Assembly: GCF_006345805.1 (NCBI RefSeq)
Contig: NC_043000.1
Location: 16,616,001 to 16,680,000, forward strand
Source: Octopus sinensis
Lineage: Eukaryota
Length of the DNA: 64,000 nucleotides
Reading direction: 5' to 3'
The translations under genes and the position numbers were made by a program. This document shows positions 4,550 through 42,394 of the stretch, in pieces. Positions within the stretch are counted from its first letter, which is position 1, and each line of letters begins with the position of its first letter. The notes under the pieces were generated by a model that ran no database searches, had not been told where the DNA came from, and saw only the letters and a program-made list of their open reading frames with translations.

Positions 4550-4587
<38 letters not shown>

Positions 4588-4831: not shown

Positions 4832-5002
4832 CTTTGTCAACAGCAGCAGCAGCTTGTTGTTGTTGCTGTTGCATTTTTTGCTGATGCTTTTCGATAAAGC
4901 GGAGATAATCATCGCTTTCTTCATCATCATCGTCATGATGGGGGCTGCTGCTGTCCTCGGTGATAGTTATGGTGGGTGTTTTCCCCGCCACAGCGAGACG
5001 GG
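4832..5002 (-). CDS. Internal exon, 171 nt: (A)RLAVAGKTPTITITEDSSSPHHDDDDEESDDYLRFIEKHQQKMQQQQQQAAAAVDK(G)
   Basis: Strong acceptor ttttgttgttactttcag| and donor |gttaga; GC-richer island; phase 1-1; lies within ORF 4827..5207. Confidence 0.85.
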
Positions 5003-9336: not shown

Positions 9337-9377
<41 letters not shown>

Positions 9378-9540
9378 TATCATATATATACATATATATA
9401 TATGTGTATATATATATATATATATATAATATATATATCATATATATATATTATATATATATATATATTATATATATATATATATATAATATATATTATA
9501 TATATGTATCATATATATACATAATATTATATATATATGT
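9175..9540. repeat. (TA)n array with a ~60-bp higher-order unit
   Basis: The tcata landmark falls at about 9197, 9261, 9319, 9381 and 9439. The first four are followed by tatatacatatatatatatgtg. Confidence 0.85.
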
Positions 9541-11783
9541 TGTTTGCAAAATACATAAATCCAAAAGAAGCACACTCTAAGATGTATATACTAAAAATGG
9601 GGAAAGCTGGTTTATTGGATTATCTTAGGTTTCCTGTCCATAAAGGGTTTAGCTTTAAGATGTATCGTCAGAGTTTCAAAAACTTGTTGGCCCATGACCT
9701 GTTTAAAATATTTTCAAGAGGTCATGGGCCAGCAGGTTTTCGGGATCTGATGATATGCCATAAAACTGAACCATTTATGGATGGGAAACCTAAGGTAATC
9801 CCACAAACCATCCGTCCCCATTTTTAATGTATATATCAAACACACCCCTGTACACACAAATGCTCACACTTGCACGCATAACACACAGCTGCTCACACTT
9901 GCACGCATATACACAGCAGTACAAACGCAGATACACGCAAAATGTATGTCCATTCGAATCTGATTCAAGAATCCGTAGAAAAATTTTTACTTTACTGACC
10001 TGTCCAACCCTTAATTGCATACATAAAAACGAAGGTAGGAATGCTTAAAAAAACAAAACTAAAAAAGCAAACAAAACAAATAAAAATAAAAATCGGCAGG
10101 TAACGATTATTGATTTTGTTGTATGCATATAAAGTGTGTGTGCGTGCGTGCATTTGCAAGTGAGTGTTTTTTTATGTATTTGTATGCTACAAATGAAATG
10201 CTACAGATGAAAATAACGAAGCATAAGAGGTAATGATCTTATGGAAAATAATAATAGTAATAATGAGGAAGACACAAATGGCATGCGAAGGACAATGAAT
10301 AACAACACTAAGGCATTTTTTTTTAACAAATCAAAAAACACCACCACCAAAAGTTTGAAGAGCTTTTACTTCAATCAATGTATTAGTCAAGAAAGCTAAA
10401 AGTAATTGAATAATGCAAATGAAATATGAAGAAGCTGAGAGTAATAGTAAATAATAATAACGATGACAAATAATAGCAACATAAAGAAAAATTTTGTATA
10501 AAATACAGAAAAGGAGACATATCTAAGAATTTTATGAAAGCATGCATATCTCTGAAAATTATTAGGTTATGAATGATGTATTTAGCAGTTATTTTTATAA
10601 ATACCAGCACCGTAATGAGGCAAATACATCTTCAAAGTTGCTAGAAATATCTTCTAATGCACACTGTACTTGAGAGGGAATATGAAGAATGTCACAAAAG
10701 AATGCTTATGACCGAAAGATAGAAGCTGTGTGGTCAATGAAAAGATGGTGAAATGACCCACAAGAGGAGAAACTGTGTAACCACTGAAGAAGTAGTTGTA
10801 TAATAGTTATTGATAAGAGAGATAGAGGACTATGGAAGGGAGGACTTGATGGCTTCTGATGAGAGGGTTACATGGCCACAAGAAATAATTAGCAGGACCA
10901 CTGAAGAGGTGGTTATAGTGTTACCTATGAAATGTGTGACCACTGAATTGATGGTTATACAACTACTAGCAATCTGGCTATATAGCCACTGAAAAGAAAG
11001 GGTTATATGACTACCAAAACTATAGTCATATGTACAGATGGTCATTGAAAAGGTGATTTCATTGTCAATGAGTGTTTAGTTGTATGGCCATGAAAAGATG
11101 GTGAAGTCAACCAATATTGATCCCTCAATACAACATTCATGAACTTGTTGAAATATTTCTAAAGCATATGTTAATCAAAGACTTTTCTGGATCATCGTTG
11201 TTGTCATTAATATTGCTTACCTGATAAAGTGTCAAGCAAATGAAATCTTTGTATTGTCTTTGAGTGCCAATTCACACAAAACAAAAAAAAAAGGTGGAGG
11301 GGGAATGAATAAAAATATGTAATAAAAACAAGCCAAATAAGATGTAATAAACCAGTTTCTACACGGAAATGAAACCTGTCAGAAGTTAGAGGATGATGGT
11401 TAAAACTCTAGGAAGTGGCATCAAAGTGCAATCAGAGAAGTCATCACTCAAATGTTGACCAACAACAACAACAATCCTGGTTTTGGTGAAGATAAAGGCC
11501 TGTTTTTTCTTTTTTCCTCAGTAACAACAGTGAAGTTGTATTTCTGAGAGACACTTTGAAGAGAATGGTTAGTTAGAGCGCTTTTGCTTAAATCAGTTTT
11601 GTTTTTATACCAGAACCTTTATATTAAGCTGAGGCCAAGGTTGAAGATATCTTTCAGCAGATATTAAGAAGAGACGAAAGTGTAAGAACGTGAACAAGTG
11701 AGTGAATGAAAAAGAGAGTGACTGAGCAAAAAAAAGAGAGAGAGAGAGAGAGGTAGGCAAAAACCAGAGATCATCTAAATTAC

Positions 11784-14700
11784 CTTGTGAAGATGTTTTT
11801 TTCTTCTTACGATTTGATTTACGAGATTTCCGTGAAGACTTTTTTGTTGTGACCTCTTTAGTGGGGTCAGATAGAACGGTCGGTGTGCGAGAGTCTTGGA
11901 ATTGGAGAGTATCTTGGTCTGAAGTTGACTGAGATGATATGTGAGTGGAATATGAAATGTCCCCTTGCTGAGTAGTGCTACTTTGAGAGCGACTACTAGA
12001 AGGTGCATCGGGTTGTTGGGTGGAAAGATGGAGGATGGATACGTCACCCTGTTGATGACCAGAGAGCTCATCAGATTTTGGAAAACTGTGTGTGATGTGT
12101 GTTTGTTCAATGTTATAGCTACTACTTTCACCTGATTGACCAGTATGTTCAAAAGTATACTTGCATTCAGTGCTGCTGCTCTGTTGAAGACCTTGTCCAA
12201 AGCTATATTCAGTGCCCTGCTGTTCAGTACCTTGAACTAACTTGGACTGACCTTGTCCAGTGGAAAGGTCATCTTTTTGCGATTGAGCTCCCTCAGAGGT
12301 GGGGTTCTTTTGTACATGTGTCTGGACGACAGAGACTATTCCACCTTCCTCTTGAAGGTGACCAGCATCACTGTCAGACGTAAGGACAGTGGTTAGAATC
12401 TGACCACCAGTGGATACTTTATTACAATGAATGTCAACAGTTTTGTCACCAACTTGATTACCATTTTCACCAGTTTGAGAATCAGCATGACGTAAATCAA
12501 CTTGATGAGACTGAAGAGGAATATGTTGTTGAACATCTTGACCAGTGGACAGATGAAAACAATGTAGAGGAACATGTTTGGACACAGATGGGTCAGCAGT
12601 TTGAGGTGCAAGGAAAATTTGTTCGGTGACAGGGGGGTTAATATAAAAGCAGTATTGATCATCCCTATACTGGTCACTATGTTCGAGGTCATACTGACAT
12701 TCAAAGACATTACCTTGGTCAGTATGTCTGAGGCTATACTCGCATTCTTTGTTATCTCTATGTTGGTCAATATATTTGATGCTATATTGACATTGAAAGT
12801 CATCTTGTCGTTGTTCACTGTCTTTGAGGCCGTACCGACATTCACGGTCATCTCCATGTTGGTCAGTATGTTTGAGGCCATATTCATGGTCATCTCCATG
12901 CTGGTCACTATGTTTAAGGCCATACCGACATTCATGGTCATCTCCATGTTGGTCAGTATGTTTAAGGCCATATCGACATTCATGGTCATCTCCATGCTGG
13001 TCAGTATGTTTAAGGCCATATCGACATTCATGGTCATCTCCATGCTGGTCAGTATGTTTAAGGCCATATCGACATTCATGGTCATCTCCATGCTGGTCAG
13101 TATGTTTAAGGCCATATCGACATTCATGGTCATCTCCATGCTGGTCAGTATGTTTAAGGCCATATCGACATTCATGGTCATCTCCATGCTGGTCAGTATG
13201 TTTAAGGCCATATCGACATTCATGGTCATCTCCATGCTGGTCAGTATGTTTAAGGCCATATCGACATTCATGGTCATCTCCATGTTGGTCACTATGTTTA
13301 AGGCCATATCGACATTCATGGTCATCTCCATGTTGGTCACTATGTTTAAGGCCATATCGACATTCATGGTCATCTCCATGCTGGTCAGTATGTTTAAGGC
13401 CATATCGACATTCATGGTCATCTCCATGCTGGTCAGTATGTTTGAGGCCATATCGACATTCATGATCATCTCCATGTTGGTCAGTATGTTTGAGGCCATA
13501 CCGACATTCATGGTCATCTCTATGTTGACCAGTATTTTGAACTGACTTGAACTTATCTTGCCCACTGGATAGGTCATCTTTTTTGAGCTGTCCTTGGCAT
13601 GAGGTGACATTGAGATTTTGTACTTGTGCCTGAATGCTAGGGACAGCCCCATCTGAACTGACACTTCCATCAACATTATGATCTTCCTCTTGAAGGTGAC
13701 CAACATCACTGTCAGATGTCAGGACAGTGGTTAGAATCTGACCACCAGCAGATACTTTATCACAATGAACTCCAACAATTTTGTTAGTATCTTGATTACC
13801 ATCTTCAGTTCGAGAATCATCATGATGTAATTCAACTTGATGAGCCTGAAGAGGAAGATGTTGATGAACATCTTGACCAGTGGACAGATGAAAACTATGT
13901 AGAGGTATATGTTTGTTCGTGGATAGGTCAGTAGTTTCATGTGCAAGGGAAATTTTTTCGGTTATAGGGGGGTCAACATAATAGCAGTACTGATCGGCAG
14001 GAAAATTGTCAACTAAAGGATCTTGATCAACAGATAAGTCAATGGGCTTGCAACTATCTTGACCGGTGGAGAGGTCAACGTGATGCAGGCGTGAACCACC
14101 TGTTGGGGTGTCACTATGGAAGGAAGGCCGATTAGTTGAAAGACCATCACGATGATCCTCTTGGCTAGTAGGAAGATCAGCATGAACTGGTAACCCACCA
14201 ATGTATGTATTGCCTTTATTGGATGGTAAAGCAAAACCACGTGGATCAACACTGGAACTACCTTTATCTGTGAGCTGCTCAATACTTGACAGCTCTTGGC
14301 CTTCACCAATGTGAATATCTGCCTTTTTAAGTTGATCTCGACTTGTGGGAACTGGAATACCTTCACCAGTATACTGTTCCTGAGCAAGTGGAAATTTCAG
14401 GTCAGAGGATGTGACAGGAGACTGCATATCTACAATTTGAGAGGACATATGATGTATTCCTGGAGTAGAAACCACAGTCACACTACGAATGCCTTCAGGA
14501 GCAGGTATTACAACATTGTTTTCAACATCCTGACCAGCACGTAAACCAATGTTACCTTGTACATCCTGATGCGTAGGTTGATCAATATCGCTTGTAGGTC
14601 TCAGCTGACTATGTTGGTCAACTCTGTGTAGTTGTTCAAGATTACTTGGAACATCCACATGATAAACACCTGCACCAATGGACAGTCTATTACCATGATC

Positions 14701-17700
14701 ATCTTGAGCAGTGAATGGAGAAATAGGCTGGCCATATTGGTCAGTGGGAATATGAACAGCATCAGTATCTTGAGTGGATATTTTATTATATTGAACACCT
14801 GGAGCAATGGGCTGTTTGATTATATGATCATCTTGTTTAGTAGGCAATTGGCCTTGACTAGTAGGAAGATCAGGTGTTGTATGATATTCTCCAATAGACT
14901 GTCCAATAATTTCTGGGGTATCATGACGTGTAGTGACGTCAGCATTGCCTGCTGGTTTATCGACAGGCTGAGAGCCACCTTGAGAAGAAGGTTTGGCAGC
15001 ACGATGTAGCTGTTCTAGATCCACTGGAAGATCAACATGATAAACACCAAATGGACCACTAGGTTTGGCCACATCAATACTTTGCAGTTGTTTGCTGGCT
15101 GGCAGATCATGATACTGAAAATTATCTTTAGTTTTGGACATTTGTACCTGTGGAATATCTTGAGGAGAGAGTATTTCAATATTATAATCTTGATCAGGTA
15201 GAAGTTGTCGACCATGAAGAAGAGTGACATCACCTGTTTCAGTAGTATCAGCTGACTGACCAACAGGATACTCTCTGTCAACATAGTGCAAAGTTCCCGG
15301 AATAACAGGATGGTCAACAGGATAAACACTTCCACCAACAGAGCGTCTGATATTTTGATCAGTAGGAATAGGGACTTGCTGACCAATGTAACCAACAGAT
15401 GGCTCAACAACATGAATGTCTTTACGAGAGAGTGGCTCTACAGGTAGCTGGTGATCTTGACCTGGAAAAACATAAACAGGTGTGGTACGATACTCTCCAA
15501 TAGTGTGTTCAATACCTTCTGGGAAGTCTTGAGTACTTCGTATGTCAGCTTGAGTAAGTGATTTGTCAATATCTTGAGAGCTGACTGGACGGGAAGGTGG
15601 GTCAACACGATGTAATTGCTCAAGATCCACTGGAAGATCAACATGGTAGACACCAAATGAACCAGTAGGTTTGGTAACTTTAGTATCTGGCAGCACTTCA
15701 CCAGTTGGTACATCATAATATTCATCATGATCTTCAGGTTTCCTCATTTCTACGTGTGGAATATCTGGAGCAGACAGCTTTCCAATGTTATAATCTTGAT
15801 CAGATGGAATTTGTTGACTATATGAAATGTTGGTTTCAACTGGTTCAATGCTATCAACTGATTGATTGATAGGAAACTCTCCACTTTGAAAGGAAGGTTT
15901 CTCAACACGGTGCAAAGTTTCCAGAGCAACAGGTTGGTCTACATGATATACACCTCCACCAACAGAGCGTCTGACATTCCGATCAGTAGGAATAGGGACT
16001 TGCTGATGAATTTGATCAACAGATGACTCAACTACAGGAATGTCTTTACGAGAGAGTGGCTCTACAGGTAGCTGGTGATCTTGACCTGGAACAATATCAA
16101 CAGGTGTGGTACGATATTCTCCAATAGTGTGTACAATACCTTCTGGGAAGTCTTGAGTAGTTGGGATGTCAGCTTGAGTAAGTGATTTGTCAATATCTTG
16201 AGAGCTGACTGGACGAGAAGGTGGGTCAACACGACGTAATTGTTCAAGATCCATTGGAAGATCAACATGGTAGACACCAAATGGACCAGTAGGTTTGGTA
16301 ACTTTACTATCTGGCAGCACTTCACCAGTTGGTACATCATAATATTCATCATGATCTTCAGGTTTCCTCATTTCTACGTGTGGAATATCTGGAGCAGACA
16401 GCTTTCCAATGTTATAATCTTGATCAGATGGAATTTGTTGACTATACGAAATGTTGGTTTCAACTGGTTCAATGCTATCAACTGATTGATTGATAGGATA
16501 CTCTCCACTTTGAAAGGAAGGTTTCTCAACACGGTGCAAAGTTTCCAGAGCAACAGGCTGGTCTACATGATATACACCTCCACCAACCGAGCGTCTGACA
16601 TTTTGATCAGTAGGAATAGGGACTTGCTGATGAATTTGATCAACAGATGACTCAACTACAGGAATGTCTTTACGAGAGAGTGGCTCAACAGGTAGATCGT
16701 GATCTTGACCTGGGACAACATCAACAGGTGTGGTACGATATTCTCCAATAGTGTGTTCAATACCTTCTGGGAAGTCTTGAGTAGTTGGGATGTCAGCTTG
16801 AGTAAGTGATTTGTCAATATCTTGAGAGCTGACCGGACGAGAAGGTGGGTCAACACGATGTAATTGTTCAAGATCCACTGGAAGATCAACATGGTAGACA
16901 CCGAATGGACCAGTAGGTTTGGTAACTTTAGTATCTGGCAGCACTTCACCAGTTGGTACATCATAATATTCATCATGATCTTCAGGTTTCCTCATTTCTA
17001 CGTGTGGAATATCTGGAGCAGACAGCTTTCCAATGTTATAATCTTGATCAGATGGAATTTGTTGACTATACGCAATGTTGGCATCAACTGGTTCAATGCT
17101 ATCAACTGATTGATCAATAGGATACTCTCCACTTTGAAAGGAAGGTTTCTCAACACGGTGCAAAGTTTCCAGAGCAACAGGCTGGTCTACATGATATACA
17201 CCTCCACCAACCGAGCGTCTGACATTCCGATCAGTAGGAATAGGGACTTGCTGATGAATTTGATCAACAGATGACTCAACTACTGGAATGTCTTTACGAG
17301 AGAGTGGCTCAACAGGTAGATCGTGATCTTGACCTGGGACAACATCAACAGGTGTGGTACGATATTCTCCAATAGTGTGTTCAATACCTTCTGGGAAGTC
17401 TTGAGTAGTTGGGATGTCAGCTTGAGTAAGTGATTTGTCAATATCTTGAGAGCTGACTGGACGAGAAGGTGGGTCAACACGATGTAATTGCTCAAGATCC
17501 ACTGGAAGATCAACATGGTAGACACCAAATGGACCAGTAGGTTTGGTAACTTTAGTATCTGGCAGCACTTCACCAGCTGGTACATCATAATATTCATCAT
17601 GATCTTCAGGTTTCCTCATTTCTACATATGGAATATCTGGAGCAGACAGCTTTCCAATGTTATAGTCTTGATCAGATGGAATTTGTTGACTATACGAAAT

Positions 17701-20700
17701 GTTGGCATCATCTGGTTCAATGCTATCAACTGATTGATCAATAGGATACTCTCCACTTTGAAAGGAAGGTTTCTCAACACGGTGCAAAGTTTCCAGAGCA
17801 ACAGGCTGGTCTACATGATATACACCTCCACCAACAGAACGTCTGACATTCCGATCAGTAGGAATAGGGACTTGCTGATGAATTTGATCAAGAGATGACT
17901 CAACTACAGGAATGTCTTTACGAGAGAGTGGCTCTACAGGTAGCTGGTGATCTTGACCTGGAAAAACATCAACAGGTGTGGTACGATATTCTCCAATAGT
18001 GTGTTCAATACCTTCTGGGAAGTCTTGAGTAGTTGGGATGTCAGCTTGAGTAAGTGATTTGTCAATATCTTGAGAGCTGACTGGACGAGAAGGTGGGTCA
18101 ACACGATGTAATTGCTCAAGATCCACTGGAAGATCAACATGGTAGACACCAAATGGACCAGTAGGTTTGGTAACTTTAGTATCTGGCAGCACTTCACCAG
18201 CTGGTACATCATAATATTCATCATGATCTTCAGGTTTCCTCATTTCTACATATGGAATATCTGGAGCAGACAGCTTTCCAATGTTATAGTCTTGATCAGA
18301 TGGAATTTGTTGACTATACGAAATGTTGGCATCATCTGGTTCAATGCTATCAACTGATTGATCAATAGGATACTCTCCACTTTGAAAGGAAGGTTTCTCA
18401 ACACGGTGCAAAGTTTCCAGAGCAACAGGCTGGTCTACATGATATACACCTCCACCAACAGAACGTCTGACATTCCGATCAGTAGGAATAGGGACTTGCT
18501 GATGAATTTGATCAACAGATGACTCAACTACAGGAATGTCTTTACGAGAGAGTGGCTCAACAGGTAGCTGGTGATCTTGACCTGGAAAAACATCAACAGG
18601 TGTGGTACGATATTCTCCAATAGTGTGTTCAATACCTTCTGGGAAGTCTTGAGTAGTTGGGATGTCAGCTTGAGTAAGTGATTTGTCAATATCTTGAGAG
18701 CTGACTGGACGAGAAGGTGGGTCAACACGATGTAATTGTTCAAGATCCACTGGAAGATCAACATGGTAGACACCAATGGACCAGTAGGTTTGGTAACTTT
18801 ACTATCTGGCAGCACTTCACCAGTTGGTACATCATAATATTCATCATGATCTTCAGGTTTCCTCATTTCTACTGTGGAATATCTGGAGCAGACAGCTTTC
18901 CAATGTTATAATCTTGATCAGATGGAATTTGTTGACTATACGAAATGTTGGTTTCAACTGGTTCAATGCTATCAACTGATTGATTGATAGGATACTCTCC
19001 ACTTTGAAAGGAAGGTTTCTCAACACGGTGCAAAGTTTCCAGAGCAACAGGCTGGTCTACATGATATACACCTCCACCACCGAGCGTCTGACATTTTGAT
19101 CAGTAGGAATAGGGACTTGCTGATGAATTTGATCAACAGATGACTCAACTACAGGAATGTCTTTACGAGAGAGTGGCTCAACAGGTAGATCGTGATCTTG
19201 ACCTGGGACAACATCAACAGGTGTGGTACGATATTCTCCAATAGTGTGTTCAATACCTTCTGGGAAGTCTTGAGTAGTTGGGATGTCAGCTTGAGTAAGT
19301 GATTTGTCAATATCTTGAGAGCTGACCGGACGAGAAGGTGGGTCAACACGATGTAATTGTTCAAGATCCACTGGAAGATCAACATGGTAGACACCGAATG
19401 GACCAGTAGGTTTGGTAACTTTAGTATCTGGCAGCACTTCACCAGTTGGTACATCATAATATTCATCATGATCTTCAGGTTTCCTCATTTCTACGTGTGG
19501 AATATCTGGAGCAGACAGCTTTCCAATGTTATAATCTTGATCAGATGGAATTTGTTGACTATACGCAATGTTGGCATCAACTGGTTCAATGCTATCAACT
19601 GATTGATCAATAGGATACTCTCCACTTTGAAAGGAAGGTTTCTCAACACGGTGCAAAGTTTCCAGAGCAACAGGCTGGTCTACATGATATACACCTCCAC
19701 CAACCGAGCGTCTGACATTCCGATCAGTAGGAATAGGGACTTGCTGATGAATTTGATCAACAGATGACTCAACTACTGGAATGTCTTTACGAGAGAGTGG
19801 CTCAACAGGTAGATCGTGATCTTGACCTGGGACAACATCAACAGGTGTGGTACGATATTCTCCAATAGTGTGTTCAATACCTTCTGGGAAGTCTTGAGTA
19901 GTTGGGATGTCAGCTTGAGTAAGTGATTTGTCAATATCTTGAGAGCTGACTGGACGAGAAGGTGGGTCAACACGATGTAATTGCTCAAGATCCACTGGAA
20001 GATCAACATGGTAGACACCAAATGGACCAGTAGGTTTGGTAACTTTAGTATCTGGCAGCACTTCACCAGCTGGTACATCATAATATTCATCATGATCTTC
20101 AGGTTTCCTCATTTCTACATATGGAATATCTGGAGCAGACAGCTTTCCAATGTTATAGTCTTGATCAGATGGAATTTGTTGACTATACGAAATGTTGGCA
20201 TCATCTGGTTCAATGCTATCAACTGATTGATCAATAGGATACTCTCCACTTTGAAAGGAAGGTTTCTCAACACGGTGCAAAGTTTCCAGAGCAACAGGCT
20301 GGTCTACATGATATACACCTCCACCAACAGAACGTCTGACATTCCGATCAGTAGGAATAGGGACTTGCTGATGAATTTGATCAAGAGATGACTCAACTAC
20401 AGGAATGTCTTTACGAGAGAGTGGCTCTACAGGTAGCTGGTGATCTTGACCTGGAAAAACATCAACAGGTGTGGTACGATATTCTCCAATAGTGTGTTCA
20501 ATACCTTCTGGGAAGTCTTGAGTAGTTGGGATGTCAGCTTGAGTAAGTGATTTGTCAATATCTTGAGAGCTGACTGGACGAGAAGGTGGGTCAACACGAT
20601 GTAATTGCTCAAGATCCACTGGAAGATCAACATGGTAGACACCAAATGGACCAGTAGGTTTGGTAACTTTAGTATCTGGCAGCACTTCACCAGCTGGTAC

Positions 20701-23700
20701 ATCATAATATTCATCATGATCTTCAGGTTTCCTCATTTCTACATATGGAATATCTGGAGCAGACAGCTTTCCAATGTTATAGTCTTGATCAGATGGAATT
20801 TGTTGACTATACGAAATGTTGGCATCATCTGGTTCAATGCTATCAACTGATTGATCAATAGGATACTCTCCACTTTGAAAGGAAGGTTTCTCAACACGGT
20901 GCAAAGTTTCCAGAGCAACAGGCTGGTCTACATGATATACACCTCCACCAACAGAACGTCTGACATTCCGATCAGTAGGAATAGGGACTTGCTGATGAAT
21001 TTGATCAACAGATGACTCAACTACAGGAATGTCTTTACGAGAGAGTGGCTCAACAGGTAGCTGGTGATCTTGACCTGGAAAAACATCAACAGGTGTGGTA
21101 CGATATTCTCCAATAGTGTGTTCAATACCTTCTGGGAAGTCTTGAGTAGTTGGGATGTCAGCTTGAGTAAGTGATTTGTCAATATCTTGAGAGCTGACTG
21201 GACGAGAAGGTGGGTCAACACGATGTAATTGTTCAAGATCCACTGGAAGATCAACATGGTAGACACCAAATGGACCAGTAGGTTTGGTAACTTTAGTATC
21301 TGGCAGCACTTCACCAGCTGGTACATCATAATATTCATCATGATCTTCAGGTTTCCTCATTTCTACAAATGGAATATCTGGAGCAGACAGCTTTCCAATG
21401 TTATAATCTTGATCAGATGGAATTTGTTGACTATACGAAATGTTGGCATCAACTGGTTCAATGCTATCAACTGATTGATCAATAGGATACTCTCCACTTT
21501 GAAAGGAAGGTTTCTCAACACGGTGCAAAGTTTCCAGAGCAACAGGCTGGTCTACATGATATACACCTCCACCAACAGAGCGTCTGACATTCCGATCAGT
21601 AGGAATAGGGACTTGCTGATGAATTTGATCAAGAGATGACTCAACTACAGGAATGTCTTTACGAGAGAGTGGCTCTACAGGTAGCTGGTGATCTTGACCT
21701 GGGACAATATCAACAGGTGTGGTACGATATTCTCCAATAGCGTGTTCAATACCTTCTGGGAAGTCTTGAGTAGTTGGGATGTCAGCTTGAGTAAGTGATT
21801 TGTCAATATCTTGAGAGCTGACTGGACGAGAAGGTGGGTCAACACGATGTAATTGCTCAAGATCCACTGGAAGATCAACATGGTAGACACCAAATGGACC
21901 AGTAGGTTTGGTAACTTTAGTATCTGGCAGCACTTCACCAGCTGGTACATCATAATATTCATCATGATCTTCAGGTTTCCTCCTCATTTCTACATATGGA
22001 ATATCTGGAGCAGACAGCTTTCCAATGTTATAATCTTGATCAGATGGAATTTGTTGACTATACGAAATGTTGGCATCATCTGGTTCAATGCTATCAACTG
22101 ATTGATCAATAGGATACTCTCCACTTTGAAAGGAAGGTTTCTCAACACGGTGCAAAGTTTCCAGAGCAACAGGCTGGTCTACATGATATACACCTCCACC
22201 AACAGAACGTCTGACATTCCGATCAGTAGGAATAGGGACTTGCTGATGAATTTGATCAACAGATGACTCAACTACAGGAATGTCTTTATGAGAGAGTGGC
22301 TCTACAGGTAGCTGGTGATCTTGACCTGGAAGAACATCAACAGGTGTGGTACGATATTCTCCAATAGTGTGTTCAATACCTTCTGGGAAGTCTTGAGTAG
22401 TTGGGATGTCAGCTTGAGTAAGTGATTTGTCAATATCTTGAGAGCTGACTGGACGAGAAGGTGGGTCAACACGATGTAATTGTTCAAGATCCACTGGAAG
22501 ATCAACATGGTAGACACCAAATGGACCAGTAGGTTTGGTAACTTTACTATCTGGCAGCACTTCACCAGTTGGTACATCATAATATTCATCATGATCTTCG
22601 GGTTTCCTCATTTCTACGTGTGGAATATCTGGAGCAGACAGCTTTCCAATGTTATAATCTTGATCAGATGGGTTTTGTTGACTATACGAAATGTTGGCAT
22701 CAACTGATTGATCAATAGGATACTCTCCATTTTGAAAGCAAGGTTTCTCAACACGATGCAAAGTTTCCAGAGCAACAGGCTGGTCTACATGATATACACC
22801 TCCACCAACCGAGCGTCTGACATTTTGATCAGTAGGAATAGGGACTTGCTGATGAATTTGATCAACAGATGACTCAACTACAGGAATGTCTTTACGAGAG
22901 AGTGGCTCTACAGGTAGCTGGTGACCTTGACCTGGAAAAACATCAACAGGTGTGGTACGATACTCTCCAATAGTGTGTTCAATACCTTCTGGGAAGTCTT
23001 GAGTAGTTGGGATGTCAGCTTGAGTAAGTGATTTGTCAATATCTTGAGAGCTGACTGGACGAGAAGGTGGGTCAACACGATGTAATTGTTCAAGATCCAC
23101 TGGAAGATCAACATGGTAGACACCAAATGGACCAGTAGGTTTGGTAACTTTAGTATCTGGCAGCACTTCACCAGCTGGTACATCATAATATTCATCATGA
23201 TCTTCAGGTTTCCTCATTTCTACATATGGAATATCTGGAGCAGACAGCTTTCCAATGTTATAATCTTGATCAGATGGAATTTGTTGACTATACGAAATGT
23301 TGGCATCATTTGGTTCAATGCTATCAACTGATTGATCAATAGGATACTCTCCACTTTGACAGGAAGGTTTCTCAACACGGTGCAAAGTTTCCAGAGCAAC
23401 AGGCTGGTCTACATGATATACACCTCCACCAACAGAACGTCTGACATTCCGATCAGTAGGAATAGGGACTTGCTGATGAATTTGATCAACAGATGACTCA
23501 ACTACAGGAATGTCTTTACGAGAGAGTGGCTCTACAGGTAGCTGGTGATCTTGACCTGGAAAAACATCAACAGGTGTGGTACGATATTCTCCAATAGTGT
23601 GTTCAATACCTTCTGGGAAGTCTTGAGTAGTTGGGATGTCAGCTTGAGTAAGTGATTTGTCAATATCTTGAGAGCTGACTGGACGAGAAGGTGGGTCAAC

Positions 23701-26700
23701 ACGATGTAATTGTTCAAGATCCACTGGAAGATCAACATGGTAGACACCAAATGGACCAGTAGGTTTGGTAACTTTAGTATCTGGCAGCACTTCACCAGTT
23801 GGTACATCATAATATTCATCATGATCTTCAGGTTTCCTCATTTCTACGTGTGGAATATCTGGAGCAGACAGCTTTCCAATGTTATAATCTTGATCAGATA
23901 GGTTTTGTTGACTATACGAAATGTTGGCATCAACTAGTTCAATGCTATCAACTGATTGATCAATAGGATACTCTCCATTTTGAAAGGAAGGTTTCTCAAC
24001 ACGGTGCAAAGTTTCCAGAGCAACAGGCTGGTCTACATGATATACACCTCCACCAACCGAGCGTCTGACATTTTGATCAGTAGGAATAGGGACTTGCTGA
24101 TGAATTTGATCAACAGATGACTCAACTACAGGAATGTCTTTACGAGAGAGTGGCTCTACAGGTAGCTGGTGATCTTGACCTGGAAAAACATCAACAGGTG
24201 TGGTACGATACTCTCCAATAGTGTGTTCAATACCTTCTGGGAAGTCTTGAGTAGTTGGGATGTCAGCTTGAGTAAGTGATTTGTCAATATCTTGAGAGCT
24301 GACTGGACGAGAAGGTGGGTCAACACGATGTAATTGTTCAAGATCCACTGGAAGATCAACATGGTAGACACCAAATGGACCAGTAGGTTTGGTAACTTTA
24401 CTATCTGGCAGCACTTCACCAGTTGGTACATCATAATATTCATCATGATCTTCAGGTTTCCTCATTTCTACGTGTGGAATATCTGGAGCAGACAGCTTTC
24501 CAATGTTATAATCTTGATCAGATAGGTTTTGTTGACTATACGAAATGTTGGCATCAACTAGTTCAATGCTATCAACTGATTGATCAATAGGATACTCTCC
24601 ATTTTGAAAGGAAGGTTTCTCAACACGGTGCAAAGTTTCCAGAGCAACAGGCTGGTCTACATGATATACACCTCCACCAACCGAGCGTCTGACATTTTGA
24701 TCAGTAGGAATAGGGACTTGCTGATGAATTTGATCAACAGATGACTCAACTACAGGAATGTCTTTACGAGAGAGTGGCTCTACAGGTAGCTGGTGATCTT
24801 GACCTGGAAAAACATCAACAGTGTGGTACGATACTCTCCAATAGTGTGTTCAATACCTTCTGGGAAGTCTTGAGTAGTTGGGATGTCAGCTTGAGTAAGT
24901 GATTTGTCAATATCTTGAGAGCTGACTGGACGAGAAGGTGGGTCAACACGATGTAATTGTTCAAGATCCACTGGAAGATCAACATGGTAGACACCAAATG
25001 GACCAGTAGGTTTGGTAACTTTACTATCTGGCAGCACTTCACCAGTTGGTACATCATAATATTCATCATGATCTTCAGGTTTCCTCATTTCTACGTGTGG
25101 AATATCTGGAGCAGACAGCTTTCCAATGTTATAATCTTGATCAGATGGAATTTGTTGACTATACGAAATGTTGGCATCAACTGGTTCAATGCTATCAACT
25201 GATTGATCAATAGGATACTCTCCATTTTGAAAGCAAGGTTTCTCAACACGGTGCAAAGTTTCCAGAGCAACAGGCTGGTCTACATGATATACACCTCCAC
25301 CAACCGAGCGTCTGACATTTTGATCAGTAGGAATAGGGACTTGCTGATGAATTTGATCAACAGATGACTCAACTACAGGAATGTCTTTACGAGAGAGTGG
25401 CTCTACAGGTAGCTGGTGATCTTGACCTGGAAGAACATCAACAGGTGTGGTACGATACTCTCCAATAGTGTGTTCAATACCTTCTGGGAAGTCTTGAGTA
25501 GTTGGGATGTCAGCTTGAGTAAGTGATTTGTCAATATCTTGAGAGCTGACTGGACGAGAAGGTGGGTCAACATGATGTAATTGTTCAAGATCCACTGGAA
25601 GATCAACATGGTAGACACCAAATGGACCAGTAGGTTTGGTAACTTTACTATCTGGCAGCACTTCACCAGCTGGTACATCATAATATTCATCATGATCTTC
25701 AGGTTTCCTCATTTCTACGTGTGGAATATCTGGAGCAGACAGCTTTCCAATGTTATAATCTTGATCAGATGGAATTTGTTGACTATACGAAATGTTGGCA
25801 TCAACTGGTTCAATGCTATCAACTGATTGATCAATAGGATACTCTCCATTTTGAAAGCAAGGTTTCTCAACACGGTGCAAAGTTTCCAGAGCAACAGGCT
25901 GGTCTACATGATATACACCTCCACCAACCGAGCGTCTGACATTTTGATCAGTAGGAATAGGGACTTGCTGATGAATTTGATCAACAGATGACTCAACTAC
26001 AGAAATGTCTTTACGAGAGAGTGGCTCTACAGGTAGCTGGTGATCTTGACCTGGAAGAACATCAACAGGTGTGGTACGATACTCTCCAATAGTGTGTTCA
26101 ATACCTTCTGGGAAGTCTTGAGTAGTTGGGATGTCAGCTTGAGTAAGTGATTTGTCAATATCTTGAGAGCTGACTGGACGAGAAGGTGGGTCAACACGAT
26201 GTAATTGTTCAAGATCCACTGGAAGATCAACATGGTAGACACCAAATGGACCAGTAGGTTTGGTAACTTTAGTATCTGGCAGCACTTCACCAGCTGGTAC
26301 ATCATAATATTCATCATAATCTTCAATTTTTGTAATTTCTACATGTGGAATATCTGGAGTAGACAGCTTTCCAATGTTATAATCTTGATCAGATGGAATT
26401 TGTTGACTATACGCAATGTTGGCATCAACTGGTTCAATGCTATCAACTGATTGATCAATAGGATACTCTCCACTTTGAAAGGAAGGTTTCTCAACACGGT
26501 GCAAAGTTTCCAAAGCAACAGGCTGGTCTACATGATAGACACCTTCACCAAGAGATCGTCTGACATTTTGAGCAGCTGGTAGATCTTCATGTACATCATC
26601 TGTATCCACTGGCAAATCAACATGATCCTGACCAACTGACATTTCCGCACTCGGAACATTTTTACACATGAATGTTTCAAGAGTTTGGTTGTCAGCTTGA

Positions 26701-27556
26701 TCAGATGTGAAATTATTATCTTGGAATGAATCTTCTTGTGGTAACTCAATACGTCTGATATCTTTGGTGTTTGGCTTCTGAATCTTTTCCTGGATATGTT
26801 GATCAACATGCAGTTCAACAGTTCCTTTGACCATTTGGCCATCAGTTACTTCAACATGGTTAAGAGGACTCTGTTCTTTTTGCTGCCTGTCTTGATCAAC
26901 ATGGTAAAAGCGTTCCAGCTCAAATGGTAAATCTACACGATATAGATTTTTGTCAATAGGTATCTGAGGCTTCTGAGTAGTTCTATTGGCATCATCATTA
27001 GACTTATCATCAATGTAAAAGCAAGTTTCTGTACCAGGAACTACCTCATCCATTTCATATTCCTCAAATTTGATAGTCTGGTCTGGGTCAATGTGTTTGT
27101 GCGTTGTCTTGATCTTGTGCACCATTCGAACATTCTGCACCTTACGCTCAACCACCTTACCAGAAGGAAGTTCTTCTGTTACTTTTTCAATCACACTTAC
27201 AGAACGAGGTGGCTGTTCAAAAGTCTCAATACTGTCAATAGTCTCTGTTCCAGGTACATCAATGTTTTCCTCAACCAATCTTTCAGTACCATCTTCTGAA
27301 ACAATTTTTCTCTTAACACGAGACAGTGAATGCTTTCGGATTCGCTTAACATGGTACATAGTACCATCCTCCAAAACCTTTTCATATTCTTCCACATCAG
27401 TCTTTTCTGTAGGAGGGGTTCTGAAAACTTCACCTTCTACCTTATTCTCTATTCCAGGGGATTTTACTCTCGCAGCCTCACGTTCTATCTGTGCACCACT
27501 GGGTGATTTTTTTTTGTGTTTTTTTCTTTTCATAGCATTGGCACGTTTCCAACGGC
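11784..27556 (-). CDS. Giant internal exon: 15,773 nt as assembled, 15,777 nt (5,259 codons) after repairing four 1-bp deletions
   Basis: Acceptor ttttgctttacag|GCCGTTGG gives (G)RWKRANAMKRKK, in frame with ORF 24780..27533. Donor CAAG|gtaatt follows KKKKTSSQ. ORFs 24780..27533, 19057..24633 and 11605..18750 are one repeat-protein frame broken at about 24820, 19079, 18872 and 18776. Confidence 0.9.
12220..13995 (-). repeat. Diverged ~150-aa coding duplication (13525-13995 and 12220-12660) bracketing the 48-bp array
   Basis: DQYCYYVDPP...GGQILTTVLTSDSDVGHLQEE...KDDLSSGQ versus DQYCFYINPP...GGQILTTVLTSDSDAGHLQEE...KDDLSTGQ. Confidence 0.9.
12660..13530 (-). repeat. 48-bp coding tandem repeat, 16-aa unit QHGDDHECRYGLKH(T/S)D
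   Basis: 13 full units at exact 48-bp spacing (13512 down to 12936), one 42-bp unit, one variant unit, then 3-4 degenerate units. Confidence 0.97.
15345..26560 (-). repeat. 624-bp coding tandem repeat, 18 near-identical 208-aa units plus a degenerate 19th
   Basis: The cgtctga landmark occurs at 26557, 25933, 25309, 24686, 24062, 23438, 22814, 22208, 21581, 20957, 20333, 19709, 19085, 18464, 17840, 17216, 16592, 15968 and 15344. Confidence 0.98.
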
Positions 27557-28346
27557 CTGTAAAGCAAAAATTACTGAAAGGTTACTAATGGCTGAAAAAT
27601 GATAAGCCAATAATCCAGACCGGAAGAGACCAGAGAGATAAGCTAATCAGAATTGAATTGAGAAAGACACTGTTATGGATGGACAATAGAAGACACATGA
27701 ATACCACCAGATATCAAGGATGTATGTGATTTATGGATCATGGGTGAATGCTTTGTAAGTATGCGTGTGTATATATACGCACACATATATACTTACATAC
27801 ACACACAAAATAAAATTTGCCAACATACACTTATATCAGTGTGTATGCATAAAGGGGAAACTGTAAACAAAACAAAAATATAATTTAACTACATTTGCTG
27901 AGTAATAAGTTGGAAATACAGAAAACAACCAAAGTTGAGCAATAAGAGATAATTAGTCTGCATATAGAGATTGCATAATTGAGAAAGTGTTAGATCACAT
28001 TGAGAAGAATGATGAGAAGTTAGAATAGCAATGAACAAGTATAAAAAGAAGTGGTGCAACAGAGTTGGAAAGAAGCAACTTCGGTTTTCCTAAACAGAGT
28101 GAAGAATCCTCAACAAATTCCCTAATTCACCTCATCCCATTTTGCCACCCTGATTGCTAACAGGAAGTCATCTGTCTCAGTGGAGAGTGACTTCCATCAA
28201 TGTATCTGATGCCATTCATTGGTCTCTGTAAATGGTCAGTGATAATTTCTTTGCTATTTTTGAAGAACACTGCAACATTACTGGTGGTTGTTATATCATT
28301 TATACATAGAGATAGTAATTATCCAATGATATTAGCCTATAATATA

Positions 28347-36820: not shown

Positions 36821-37165
36821 AAAGAGAGAGAGAGAGACTGAAATTAATACTGAAGATGTAACCCACATAATAAGCAGTTATCCAAAAAATGTTTTCATGA
36901 TACTATTGATGTCAGATGCATGATGTAGTGGCCAAATATTTTGTACAAAATATCAGAACATTGATGCTATGATTAAAATCCTACTTGAGCAAGATATTTA
37001 ATTACCTAAATTCTGTAGCAGTACTTCTAAAGCACTTGCAAAAATGAGTTATTTTTCTACATTTATGGATATGAATATTAGCAAGTGGCTTGGGTGTTCT
37101 TTGTAATGTTTTATGGTTTCTGTCAATGGTTTGGCGAGGTACTACAGCTTAAAATCCATAATTAC

Positions 37166-40100
37166 CTTTGCTGACACTTAGACCTTCATGTAGAAACACA
37201 TCTTGATTGGACTTGGCAGCACAGCCACGTAGGATGGACATATATTCTTCTTTGGGTGGAGCTATCTCAAATTCTTGTGTGAACAAATCTGATTCTTCTA
37301 AAGGTATTACTTTGACTTGAGAAGCTGTAGTAGCATCTTTAACATTAACCTTATCACAAAGACATGAGGAAGTTACATCTTCTATAGTGCATGGTGGTAC
37401 TGCAAGTGTCTGAACATCTACCATAGGAATATCACAGATGCTTCCACCAGCTTGACCATCAAGGGCATCAAAACTACAAGACACATCAGTGAAAGAACGG
37501 GCTTTCTGTCCTCTTATAATAGACAGGCTTTCCAATTTGGGTCTTTCAAAAGTTACTTTTTCTTCCACTCTGAATATTTCAAAATCCAACAGAGACAAAG
37601 AACCAACAGAATATGTCAATGGGAAAGTTTGTTTAGGATTTAGCTGCTGCATCACTGCATGACAGTTTTTACCATTCCCAGGTGTTACAGATGACTTGGA
37701 TACCTCTTGCCTAGATGGAATCTGAATAGGTTCATGTTCTAATGATATATCAGAAGATATTTTCTTTAAACAGCCTTTATACCTACTTGAAGAATTCCCA
37801 GATGAGACAGTATCATCAAATGGAAATTTATAACAAAAACGGTTATCCATTTGGGGAATTCTGTGTGAGCATACATTGTCTGAACCCTTTACTGGTCCAC
37901 TTAGTAATTCTTTGGTCTTCAAAGAATTTTCATCCATCATATTTGAGACCATTCCAAGAGAGAAAAACTGGTTAGAAAATGGTTTAGTGAAGTCATAAAG
38001 AATTTGTTTCTTACCGAAGTGATTACTAAGACCAGATCTGGAGGTGCGGGTACCAAAAGGAGGAAAACTTTGGAAAGAGAAAGGAATTTCTTGCAAGCCA
38101 AACCAATTCGGACCACATGGTGAGTTTAGATAAGGCATTTTGTTACTTCTGAAACCTGTATAGCAACTATTATCCAAGATGTTAGAATATGGGGTATCAG
38201 AATCAGACATTTGTGTAACATTACTGGGATATCTTGCCAGACTTGAAGAACGGCTGGAACAATTGTACACATAATTTTCCTTCTGAAGGGGCTTGAATAA
38301 TCTTTCGTTTGTAGAAGCTCCAAATGTTGGGGGATCGTTTTCATACCTAGGGTGCAAATCTAAAGACTGACTGGAGTCATAAGTTCCTGCATTGGTAGAA
38401 CGTCGAGGAAAACTTGTACTTCTGTTCTCAGATTCTAATGTAGACATGCTCTTTGAGAAATCATGGAAATTTTTACGAGTGAAGCTTGGATTATTTAACT
38501 GATGGAAAGTTTTGCTATTCAGACTTTTCTCGTCAGAACTATTAAAAGACATGTGATCACCATCCTCACTGTTATAACTTGGTATTGTTGGACAGTGTTG
38601 GTCAAACATGCATGGGTAATGGTTATGGTTGTTAGACCTGTTAGAATAAGGGTACTGCCTGTCATAACCTTTGAAAGATAAGTTTGATTTAGGGCCACTG
38701 TAGGGGGGAGGGGGTAACATAGGGCCATAATTGTCAATGTTTTGTAGACTTTGTATAGAGTCTTTAGACTGAGAAGGCAATAGGCAGCTATTTTTTGAAT
38801 CAGGCTTCTCTGAGTTGTAACACTTCAAGTGGTCATTCTGGAAATGAGAACCTTTTGACTGTTGATACACCTGGTCACTGTTATGGGCACCCATTTCTAC
38901 AGTCCTGCGGTCAGCATTGTAATCATTGTAACAAGAGCTGCTATATAGTGGAATATTACGTTTGTTCCATAGCATATTATTCTGATCATTAGCGAACTTG
39001 CTAGGAATTGTTTTATCAACATTGAAAGCATTTTGACTAGAAAACCGTTGATTCCTAGCACTTGTTGGGTATATGAAGTAATCACAGTTGGGTATGCCCT
39101 TGTCCTTTGTCTGGCTAAGTCTATGTTGCAGATCAGAAAATAACCCTAAATTATGGTTGCCTACAAACAGACCATCAGTGCCATTTGTGTCACTGTTCCT
39201 CTCATTGGGATCATCATTAATTAGACTTTCAAGTGACAAAACATCACTCTCATCACTATCATCACAACAGCTTCCAGTATTAAACCTTCTGTAGAACATT
39301 GAACCTCTGTTAGGAATAACAGGTGTATGATAGCCCTGAGAGGGCAACATGTTATACATATTTCTAACAGGTAGCTGCTGGTTGTTACACTTTTTAAAGG
39401 AACTCCTTGGTTTGTAAATATTACTATGAAGAAGTGCAGGGTTTTCTTTAAATGACCCAGGTAAGGTTCTGGAACAATAGAAGTCTGGAGCAGTGTCTGT
39501 ATCCAATGCATTATTTTGTGAGGAAAAGACTTCATCATATTCTTCCTCACAGCATGAATCTGCAGACATTTGATCTAAGCTGTATGTATCTGGTGAATGT
39601 CTTTCATAGTCATACATATATTGTGACAAACTATGACAGTCATACGAGTCTGGTGACAGTCTGCAAGAATCATAGGAATCCTGAGACACAGTATTATAGT
39701 CATCTGTATCAGTGATCATTCTACTAGAGTCATATATGTCAGCTGTTGTTCTATGGAGGTTATATCTATTGGCTGTTATTTGATGGGAGTCATATGTATC
39801 AGATATCACACTACACAAGTCATATGTACCAGCTGTCATTGTACCTGAGTTATACATGTCACCTGTCATTGTATGTGAGTCATACATATCACCTGTCATT
39901 GTATCTGAGTCATAAGTATCAGCTGCTATTCTATGAGAGTCATATGCATTAGCTGCCAATCTATGAGAGTTACATGCATCAGCTGTCATTCTACGCAAGT
40001 CACATGTATCAGCTGTCATTCTACGTGAGTCACATGTATCAGCTGTCATTCTGTGTGAGTCACATGTATCAGCTGTCATTCTACGTGAGTCACATGTATC

Positions 40101-42394
40101 AGCTGTCATTCTACGTGAGTCACATGTATCAGCTGTCATTCTACGTGAGTCACATGTATCAGCTGTCATTCTACGTGAGTCACATGTATCAGCTGTCATT
40201 CTACGCGAGTCACATGTATCAGCTGTCATTCTACGCGAGTCACATGTATCAGCTGTCATTCTACGTGAGTCACATGTATCAGCTGTCATTCTACGTGAGT
40301 CGCATGTATCAGCTGTTATTCTATGTGAGTCACACATATCAGCATTCATTCTATAAGAATCACATGTATCAGCTGTCATTCTATGTGAGTCATAGGAATC
40401 AGCTGCCATTCTATGAGAATCATATGAATCGGCTGTCATTCTCTGTGAGTCATATGGATCAGCTGTCGTTCTTCGAGAATCATATGAATCAGCTGTCATT
40501 CTACGAGAGTCATATGGATCAGCTGTCATTCTACGAGAGTCATATGAATCAGCTGTCATTCTACAAGAGTCATATGAATCAGCTGTCATTCTACTAGAGT
40601 CATATGAATCAGCTGTCATTCTACGAGAATCATATGGATCAGCTGTCATTCTACGAGAGTCATATGGATCAGCTGTCATTCTACGAGAGTCATATGGATC
40701 AGCTGTCATTCTACGATAGTCATATGGATCAGCTGTCGTTCTTCGAGAGTCATATGAATCAGCTGTCATTCTACGAGAATCATATGAATCAGCTGTCATT
40801 CTACGAGAGTCATATGGATCAGCTGTCATTCTACGAGAGTCATATGGATCAGCTGTCATTCTACGAGAGTCATATGGATCAGCTGTCATTCTATGAGAGT
40901 CATATGAATCAGCTGTTATTCTACATGAGTCATTTGCATTAGCTGTCATCTTATGTGAGTCATACACATCTGGAGTCATTCTACCAGAGTCATATGTGTC
41001 TGATAGCATTGTGATACTGTCCTGTGAACTAAGGCTCATTCTGATAGAATTCATTTCATTGGTATCATATCTATTGGATGGCATGCTGTCATGCTTGTAC
41101 AAATCAGAAGTCGAGCTATAGCAATCCGAGTCTGGTGACAAAGGCTCAATGTCGTAGGTATCAAGAAATCTCATGCTATCATCCTTATAAATATCCAGTG
41201 AGTTACTGTCATAACTGAATGTGCTTGGAGCATGTTGCACACAACCAGATACCTTTTTATGTGAAGGATCAGAGTTAAAGGTATCTTGAGATACATTGTC
41301 ACAGCTAGTGTCAAGAGATTTCCTCTTTGCATTGAAAGTATCTACAGACTGTCTGTCTATGCCAACTGTTTCCAGAGATCCTCTTTTTAGGTTATATCCA
41401 CCTGAACTCTGTGAGTTTATATTTTGCTCACTTGAGTAGCGTGACTTACTGCCTATGTCATGTGTGTCCATAGAATTTCTGTCCAGGACACACGAGTACT
41501 CAGACATGTTATCAAAGTCATAGGGGTCTTCAGCATTTCTGTTTGAGTAATGCTTGTGAGAAGGCATTCTATTGTAGTCATACATGCCTGGAAGACTCTT
41601 GTGATGGTTGTACATGTGTGGGAAGCTTTTGCCTGTACCTGACATATACCAAGGCATTCCACCATAGTTATATGCATTAGAATACATTGGATGGGGAGGA
41701 AAGGGAAAAATGGGTGGCCTGAAATTGTTCATTTGTTGCGGAGATGGTGCTTTGTAATGAATGCGTGTATCATTGGAACTAGTTTCAATCTCTGGACACT
41801 TCTCTGGAACTAAATTTGTTTCACAGGAGCCTAATACTGGGTCAAGTTGTTCAGCATTGGAACTTTGGATAGCTGGTGTATCAACAGCAACGACAGTAAT
41901 ACAGGAGGACGTGGAACTGTTATCGTAATCATCCGATATGTTTGATATGGAATGGCAGGTCTCCGCATGTGAAACGATTGATTCCTCTTCATGTAAGGAC
42001 TCATCATGAATGTGTGAATTTAGGTTGAAAGGCTTCTCTTTCAAGTTCGAAGACATTGAATATCTGGAATCAATTAGCATGGATTGAGTGGAAGAAAACT
42101 CATCTGTTTCTCTGTGAAAATGCCTCAGTTGTGGGAGATAATTTTGACGGCACACACTGTCAAGTTCCTGAAAATTCTCAGAGAGATAAGAATTTTTCCT
42201 ATCCCTCTGCTGGCATTCATTTCTCCATACCATATCAGATTCTCTTCCTAACAACGGAGTTAAGGAGCGCTCATAATAGATATCTTCTACTTCAACACTC
42301 TGCAATTCAGAGTCATCAGGAATCCGTTGGCTTTCAAAGGAACTGTCAAGTGTGTAGTCATGAGTTATCATTTGGCCATCTGCAATGTCTGCCT
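37166..42394 (-). CDS. Second giant internal exon, 5,229 nt (1,743 codons); Ser/Asp/Tyr-rich low-complexity protein segment
   Basis: Uninterrupted ORF 37149..42410. Acceptor gattttccag|AGGCAGAC and donor AGCAAAG|gtaatt; length divisible by 3; phase 1-1. Confidence 0.92.
39556..40995 (-). repeat. 30-bp coding tandem repeat, 10-aa unit (Y/C)DSRRMTAD(P/S/T), about 48 units including degenerate flanks
   Basis: agctgtcattctacg recurs at 30-bp spacing; visible in the ORF translation. Confidence 0.97.

Follow-up and report, generated by a model that had tools for sequence, protein, structure and literature searches.

What kind of gene carries some 11.2 kb of near-identical tandem repeats in its coding sequence, and what might the protein made from them do? 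The question is raised by a locus of Octopus sinensis (NCBI RefSeq assembly GCF_006345805.1, contig NC_043000.1, positions 16,616,001 to 16,680,000), analysed here as a window of 64,000 nucleotides (nt) whose first letter is position 1. On the evidence of sequence homology, the repeat array is very probably the core of a long exon that makes a giant isoform of an octopus ankyrin. The features that bear on this conclusion are as follows.

27556..11784, minus strand: giant exon, assigned to ankyrin, 15,773 nt as assembled, phase 1 in and phase 1 out
27003..27440, minus strand: conserved head block of about 135 amino acids (aa), common to 37 mollusc proteins, which ties the exon to ankyrin
15338..26550, minus strand: main array, 18 units of 624 base pairs (bp) and 208 aa each, with two halves of about 104 aa per unit
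14732..15337, minus strand: degenerate 19th unit, 606 bp, 72% nucleotide identity; Octopus bimaculoides has an orthologous degenerate unit
12716..13535, minus strand: second repeat array, 17 copies of 48 bp, with the 16-aa His/Asp/Cys-rich unit HTDQHGDDHECRYGLK
5002..4832, minus strand: next downstream exon, 171 nt, phase 1 to phase 1, encoding ARLAVAGKTPTITITED...QQQQQQAAAAVDKG

Direct-repeat analysis resolved 18 tandem, near-identical 624-bp units at 15338–26550, in agreement with an initial annotation of the sequence, which had given the same number of units over about 11.2 kb at 15345–26560. (Tandem Repeats Finder misses the array, its maximum period being 500.) Aligned to their consensus, the units carry 6–28 substitutions each per 624 bp, and two of them depart from the standard length: one is 606 bp long through an 18-bp deletion (22202–22807) and one is 627 bp long through a 3-bp insertion (21575–22201). 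Further degenerate half-units lie in the flanks of the array. Conceptual translation of the array yields 3,735 aa, close to the roughly 3,740 aa rich in D, P, V, Q and H that had been described, with a composition of P 11.8%, V 11.4%, D 11.1%, S 7.6%, Q 7.3%, E 6.8% and H 4.1%; the 18 units encode 16 distinct unit proteins. Each 208-aa unit is itself a dimer of two homologous halves of about 104 aa (E = 1e-12), and the 17-aa motif GVYHVDxPxxLExLHRV opens each half.

The coding strand of the array is the minus strand. Within the 18 units, the plus strand holds no open reading frame (ORF) of at least 100 aa, and only one of the three minus frames is open. About 1,727 non-redundant codons are open in that frame; with stops at 7.5% in the other frames of the unit, the probability of such openness is about 1e-58, and chance is excluded as its source. 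A satellite or transposon origin of the unit was also considered and ruled out by the single open minus frame, the lack of a plus-strand ORF of at least 100 aa, and the conservation of the unit at the protein level in a second species.

The array lies in a single exon of many kilobases with canonical AG/GT borders, open throughout apart from four 1-bp deletions. Its acceptor, tttttgctttacag/G (AG at 27558–27557), and its donor, CAAG/GTAATT (GT at 11783–11782), are both strong; the first base of the exon is the second of a codon and the last base is the first of a codon. Restoring the four lost bases to the assembled 15,773 nt gives 15,777 nt, or 3 × 5,259, and thus a symmetric phase-1 exon of about 5,258 codons, so that the two ends of the exon, which are in different frames as assembled, fit one reading frame. 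The earlier description of eighteen 208-aa repeats in one exon therefore stands for the count as assembled and for the single exon; it left the minus strand unstated, and the assembled frame is broken four times and two of the units are off-length.

The downstream exon at 4832–5002 has 95% identity (tblastn) to residues 1979–2035 of a predicted O. bimaculoides protein of 7,658 aa (XP_014787059.1, “titin-like isoform X6”, one of 19 isoforms of LOC106881226; hereafter P0001). Splicing the giant exon to it produces the join “...SSQ-A-RLAVAGKTPTITITED”, which is the sequence of the O. bimaculoides protein. An internal donor after the head block, which would allow a short isoform keeping the block, was looked for and rejected: no convincing phase-compatible site was found, and the best candidate, at 27161, falls within the block itself. 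Past the giant exon, the intron that separates it from the next one contains a pair of long (TA)n microsatellites, each about 360 bp in length, at 4423–4778 and 9179–9538.

Homology to ankyrins

An exhaustive HMMER search with the head of the exon and one repeat unit returned 38 proteins. One of them, P0001, matches the head, the units and the tail of the exon; the other 37 match only the head block of about 135 aa. In one of these proteins (P0030), the head block follows a UPA_2 and a Death domain, and the N-terminal 364 aa match the ZU5-UPA-DD structure of Ankyrin-2 (4d8o, E = 3.9e-104), with matches also to Ankyrin-1 and Ankyrin-3. In another, from Arion vulgaris (P0011), a Death domain again precedes the block. 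Moreover, the last 64 or so residues of P0001 align with the C-terminal tail of P0030 at 53% identity (E = 6e-21). The octopus protein is thus bracketed by the block and the tail, both of which are markers of the post-death-domain region in mollusc ankyrins. Homology to the ankyrin region C-terminal to the death domain is found through both, and the long exon's position downstream of the death domain follows from homology of order, the block following the death domain in gastropod ankyrins. This agrees with a survey of giant ankyrins, in which protostome long exons lie downstream of the death domain (PMC5135030).

The initial annotation had proposed an independently evolved cephalopod analogue of the Drosophila giant ankyrin Ank2-XL. 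The homology of block and tail argues otherwise, placing the exon in the ankyrin gene itself and leaving only the repeat unit as lineage-specific, as is usual for exons of this class (PMC5135030). That the 208-aa unit belongs to no recognised family was borne out: it has no Pfam match, and no homologue beyond the Octopus orthologue was found among 5.8 billion and 1.84 billion proteins. Pfam also gave no match for the exon head, the exon tail or a second long ORF in the window (described below), neither the head nor the unit had a match in indexed homology searches, a profile search with the head block recovered only short unnamed gastropod fragments that added no domain context, and Rfam found nothing in the whole window.

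The O. bimaculoides gene LOC106881226 shares the head, block, unit, degenerate units, 16-aa array, exon tail and next exon with the O. sinensis locus, at 76–87% protein identity. It is annotated as “titin-like” or uncharacterized, not as an ankyrin. Titin identity was ruled out for the locus, as Pfam detects no immunoglobulin (Ig) or fibronectin type III (FN3) domains in the head, unit, tail or second ORF, and the unit is predicted to be unstructured. The equivalent of the giant exon in O. bimaculoides is only 1,978 aa long, with 6 copies of the 17-aa motif and about two or three canonical units modelled. Because two isoforms, X18 and X19, begin inside an extra canonical unit, this low count probably reflects a collapsed or gapped short-read assembly and not a true difference in copy number. 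The 16-aa array is conserved there, with more copies than the 17 of the window. The identity of the unit protein between the two species, about 83%, is similar to that of the unique parts of the exon (76–87%), which makes the unit older than the species split. As a separate observation, residues 176–215 or so of P0001, right after the beta-rich head block, hold four or five copies of an 8-aa repeat, DDESTRVT, which the window lacks.

Frame breaks and copy number

How many units the array contains, and whether its frame is intact, depends on a small number of positions in the assembly.

24821..24822, minus strand: frameshift in unit 3, CACACCTG reduced to CACA-CTG; the base is present in all other units
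18776..19079, minus strand: junction stretch in unit 13, 303 bp, with three 1-bp deletions near 19078, 18872 and 18776
16586..18776 and 19079..21269, minus strand: exact 2,191-bp duplicate; the next longest exact match in the array is 551 bp

At four places, near 24821, 19078, 18872 and 18776, a single base is deleted, which breaks the frame and leaves stop-to-stop open stretches on the minus strand at 24783–27581, 19060–24849 and 11608–18798. Every piece between the deletions translates to canonical unit sequence, and the only stops within the 11 kb of the array are those due to the four deletions. The 10.9 kb past the first break stays open and reaches the conserved donor in the phase needed by the next exon. 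The unique coding sequence of the window is unbroken, both in 4.6 kb of the giant exon and in a 5.3-kb ORF at 37149–42410. Three of the four deletions lie in or beside same-base runs (CC, TT and TTT) and the fourth in CACAC. Deletions at same-base runs are the error profile typical of long-read consensus sequence. We regard all four as most likely errors in the assembly consensus, in a region beyond short-read polishing, or at most as very young alleles, because neutral decay would not leave an open, in-phase frame downstream.

A unit-by-unit mismatch matrix showed units 10–12 to be identical, base for base, to units 14–16. With single-base offsets allowed, the whole of a four-unit block of about 2,494 bp proves to be duplicated in tandem (16379–18872 versus 18873–21366). 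Unit 13, at the junction of the duplication, is a hybrid, part of it unit-9-like and part unit-17-like, which is the product expected of an unequal crossover. Pairwise differences are largest for the units at the edges of the array (17–39 for unit 1 and 25–39 for unit 18, against 0–21 among interior units). The unequal crossing-over suggested in the initial annotation has therefore left its signature here, in a four-unit duplication with a hybrid junction unit, in length variants of +3 and −18 bp, and in the divergence of the edge units. From this pattern we infer that the array grows, shrinks and homogenises through unequal exchange between its units.

The same junction is also where the assembly is most suspect. 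A span of 303 bp (18776–19078) takes in three of the four deletions together with the only two substitutions that distinguish the duplicate copies, a clustering that also resembles a poorly supported assembly join; the count is 18 units as assembled and 14 if the duplication is an artefact. There is a substantial chance, though short of an even one, that the copy number is partly artefactual, the four-unit duplication having arisen from assembler or haplotype merging, with about 14 true units and with the frameshifts as consensus errors at the join. The exact duplicate of 2,191 bp, set against a next longest match of 551 bp, speaks for this, as do the clustering at the junction and the fact that all four lesions are deletions, three of them at short same-base runs. 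However, a genuine and very recent unequal crossover would yield an identical hybrid-unit structure, and the fourth deletion, at 24821, is at no duplication junction. Copy number and frame breaks in near-identical coding arrays are not to be taken at face value in genome assemblies.

The repeat region as a candidate tether

The conceptual product of the giant exon is 5,258 aa long (with X at the four breaks). It opens with a basic start (KRKKHKKK), followed by the conserved block, a degenerate half-repeat and the 18 units of 208 aa; after these come the degenerate 19th unit, another half-repeat, a unique region of about 600 aa, the region of the 16-aa array, a Ser/Thr/Gln-rich stretch and a basic end. 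The head block is predicted with high confidence by AlphaFold2 (predicted local distance difference test (pLDDT) 92) as an all-beta meander of long hairpins. A fold search of this model against the PDB returned only generic long beta-hairpins (E ≥ 0.07, template modelling (TM) score ≤ 0.27), and the block appears to be a folded domain, not described before, in the C-terminal region of ankyrin. In some proteins (P0002 and P0003) the block is tandemly duplicated. Towards the other end of the product, two homologous modules of about 105 aa flank the 16-aa array, and the His/Asp/Cys composition of its repeat suggests metal binding.

The disorder prediction proposed in the initial annotation gave a consistent picture. 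The unit has a net charge of −21, an isoelectric point of 4.5, 12% proline and a grand average of hydropathy of −0.70, which put it on the disordered side of the charge–hydropathy boundary; its AlphaFold2 model has a mean pLDDT of 50, a predicted TM score of 0.10 and no secondary structure. Over the whole array the net charge is about −387, and the contour length would be about 1.3 micrometres if the chain were fully extended. Across 13 diverged half-repeats from the two species, GVYHVDxPxxLExLHRV is the only element conserved at 80% or more, and the stretches of about 85 aa between its copies vary freely. The exon contains 39 copies of this motif, at intervals of about 100 and 108 aa. Such conservation suggests something more specific than a passive spacer. 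A Y-x-D-[VL]-P element (EYYDVP, QYHDLP, EYRDLP) was also noticed by eye, without statistics, once per unit as well as in degenerate copies and in O. bimaculoides. An inspection of the unit by eye for known short motifs (SxIP, RVxF, LC8, LIR and YxxP) found nothing convincing.

Taking exon, unit and motif together, we favour an explanation in which a giant-ankyrin long exon supplies a multivalent acidic tether, and consider it the probable one. In a giant and probably neuronal isoform of ankyrin, the repeat region would form a chain that is intrinsically disordered and strongly acidic, projects from the membrane-bound ankyrin–spectrin skeleton and displays about 39 copies of the 17-aa motif along its length at intervals of about 100 and 108 aa. 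On this proposal the motifs would dock a partner and the linkers would supply reach and spacing, in a functional parallel to the repeat region of Drosophila Ank2-XL. The parts of the proposal differ in strength. That the repeat region is a disordered tether is likewise probable, judging by the structure prediction; multivalent docking through the motif is put forward more tentatively, from its conservation pattern. A passive ruler that sets axon calibre, as first suggested for the array, would be a rival to this proposal and is weighed below.

Several points weigh against this explanation. A tblastn search with P0030 and P0011 as queries (E ≤ 5), covering the 36 kb of the window upstream of the exon, detected no exon for ankyrin repeats, ZU5, UPA or a death domain, so it is the homology of block and tail, and not a contiguous gene model, that ties the exon to ankyrin. 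The upstream exons expected of an ankyrin gene, for 24 ANK repeats, ZU5-ZU5-UPA and a death domain, may lie beyond position 64000, cephalopod introns being long, and we infer that the exon is contiguous with the ankyrin core. The NCBI gene models of O. bimaculoides begin at a methionine within the exon, and look-ups of the exact products of the 917-aa and 1,753-aa ORFs for transcripts or independent assemblies found none on record. As assembled, the frame is broken four times, and real breaks would cut the product short at about 2.7 units. Purifying selection among the units is weak, with a ratio of non-synonymous to synonymous differences (pN/pS) of 0.64 (p = 0.05), compared with 0.89 and 0.95 in the other two frames; copies that are young or homogenised would be expected to give such a weak signal. 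AlphaFold2 modelled the unit from a shallow alignment of 7 sequences. Finally, microtubules have an acidic surface, to which an acidic chain is unlikely to bind directly.

Among the other functional readings, the one that fares best would make the array a passive entropic spacer or ruler, in which only length and charge matter, nothing is bound specifically, and copy number sets cytoskeletal spacing or axon calibre. The predicted disorder and high acidity of the chain fit this, and the repeat region of Ank2-XL has been postulated to be a molecular spacer (PMC5135030). However, it leaves unexplained an invariant 17-aa motif amid linkers that diverge freely across copies and species, and we consider it a minority possibility. 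Somewhat less probable again is a tolerated coding minisatellite, expanding and contracting neutrally in a disordered region of a giant ankyrin, the repeats as such serving no function. The weak constraint among units (pN/pS 0.64), the youth or homogenisation of copies that are about 98% identical, and the presence of arrays in only a subset of ankyrin long exons, without conservation over distance (PMC5135030), are what such a sequence would be expected to show; set against them are the unit’s amino-acid identity of about 83% with O. bimaculoides, which makes it older than the species split, the retention of the motif in old degenerate copies, and 11 kb free of stops other than those from the four 1-bp deletions.

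A gene outside ankyrin altogether, the “titin-like” gene of the LOC106881226 annotation with its own promoter and a start at the ATG at 27533, is improbable. Such a gene would account for all 19 NCBI isoforms beginning inside the exon or inside a unit, and for the lack of an upstream ankyrin exon in the window. Yet 23 nt upstream of that ATG there is a strong acceptor, which the open frame runs across, the block and C-terminal tail are those of mollusc ankyrins and stand in the same order after the death domain, the protein is without Ig or FN3 domains and hence is not titin, and the O. bimaculoides models derive from a fragmented short-read assembly. The reading that survives least, and to which we give hardly any credence, is that of a decaying exon whose protein stops at 24780 after about 2.7 units: the four frame-breaking deletions are indeed in the assembled sequence, but neutral decay would erase the 10.9 kb of open frame beyond the first of them and the match in phase between donor and next exon.

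If the array does act as a multivalent acidic tether, a more specific version of the proposal can be formulated. Cephalopods have very large, unmyelinated axons and are a lineage with extreme axon diameters. Conceivably, though this is a long shot, the motif is a new short linear motif that recruits one axonal partner some 39 times over along a micrometre-long chain, and copy number, made polymorphic by unequal exchange, tunes cytoskeletal spacing or axon calibre. As an acidic tether on the micrometre scale, studded with motifs, the array would be a candidate organiser of the cephalopod axonal membrane skeleton and microtubules, and the 17-aa motif offers a direct starting point for finding its binding partner.

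Comparison with known giant ankyrins

Upstream of the giant exon on the same strand, the window contains a further long open frame.

37149..42394, minus strand: second long open exon candidate, from a 1,753-aa ORF (37149–42410), with the 10-aa repeat MTADxYDSRR in 43 copies and without a Pfam match

This second ORF has a good acceptor, ttttccag/AG, that places the start of the exon at 42394 in the same phase as the acceptor of the giant exon; it contains a 30-bp tandem repeat at 39698–40997 and is closed by a stop codon. It may be part of the same ankyrin gene, as a second long exon or an alternative terminal exon like those of Aplysia and Drosophila, or else a gene in its own right. Two small intronic ORFs elsewhere in the window look like transposon relics: one at 34724–34990 on the plus strand, with a weak, sub-threshold match to the DDE_3 transposase family (E = 0.0013), and one at 52316–52657 on the minus strand, with no Pfam match.

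Giant ankyrins encoded through very long exons are found across the whole of Bilateria (Jegla et al. 2016, PMC5135030). In that survey, the long exons have a mean size of 8,103 ± 4,850 bp, two tandem long exons are found in 8 of 23 loci, Aplysia included, and repeat arrays occur in only a subset of long exons, with 5 to more than 160 copies of units of 36–228 bp that are homologous only between very close relatives. The molluscs examined there are Aplysia and Lottia, with no cephalopod among them, and our literature searches found no description of a cephalopod giant ankyrin, nor of the O. bimaculoides locus or its accessions.

The comparison with Drosophila Ank2-XL made in the initial annotation is apt, in that the octopus exon corresponds, in a cephalopod, to the giant-ankyrin long exon of protostomes. 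Both are giant ankyrin isoforms with a very long exon past the death domain, and both have a core of highly similar tandem repeats. The XL exon, with its 93 repeats of 76 aa, is a proposed spacer, although only part of the array is needed for axon diameter (PMC5135030); the repeat region is required for the interaction of Ank2-XL with microtubules (PMC6703079). The octopus array, by contrast, has 18 units of 208 aa, and its unit is strongly acidic and carries the 17-aa motif. The 76-aa repeat has no sequence homology to the octopus unit, the searches of 5.8 billion and 1.84 billion proteins having found no relative of that unit beyond Octopus.

Among molluscs, the long exons reported are of 7,569 and 6,560 bp in Aplysia californica and 6,818 bp in Lottia gigantea (PMC5135030). 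As in octopus, these lie past the death domain, and the arrangement of the Aplysia pair as two tandem, non-homologous long exons with short repeat arrays parallels the two long open exons found on the same strand in the window. The octopus exon, at 15.8 kb, is about twice the length of the Aplysia and Lottia exons, and its 624-bp unit is far larger than the surveyed range of 36–228 bp and than the units of the 5 × 32 aa and 5 × 24 aa arrays in Aplysia. Of similar size is the long exon of UNC-44 in Caenorhabditis elegans, a 14,974-bp exon past the death domain that likewise contains more than one repeat family (44 × 27 aa and 7 × 60 aa; PMC5135030); its units are much shorter and its repeats are unrelated to the octopus sequence. 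In vertebrate ankyrin-G (480 kDa) and ankyrin-B (440 kDa), too, a single giant exon makes an isoform that is specific to neurons, and its long, extended insert organises the axonal cytoskeleton. Unlike the octopus exon, the vertebrate giant exon lies upstream of the death domain, and ankyrin-G is without homologous repeat arrays (PMC5135030); the vertebrate sequences have no similarity to that of octopus.

The octopus exon joins the known class of giant-ankyrin exons and is unusual within it for its size of 15.8 kb and its unit of 624 bp. It exceeds the listed long exons of the 2016 survey with which it was compared (mean 8.1 kb; C. elegans unc-44, 14,974 bp), and its unit is nearly three times the largest surveyed there (624 versus 228 bp). 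The bilaterian survey of giant ankyrins is thereby extended to cephalopods, and a gene named automatically as “titin-like” or “uncharacterized” in octopus is very probably the giant C-terminal part of an ankyrin.

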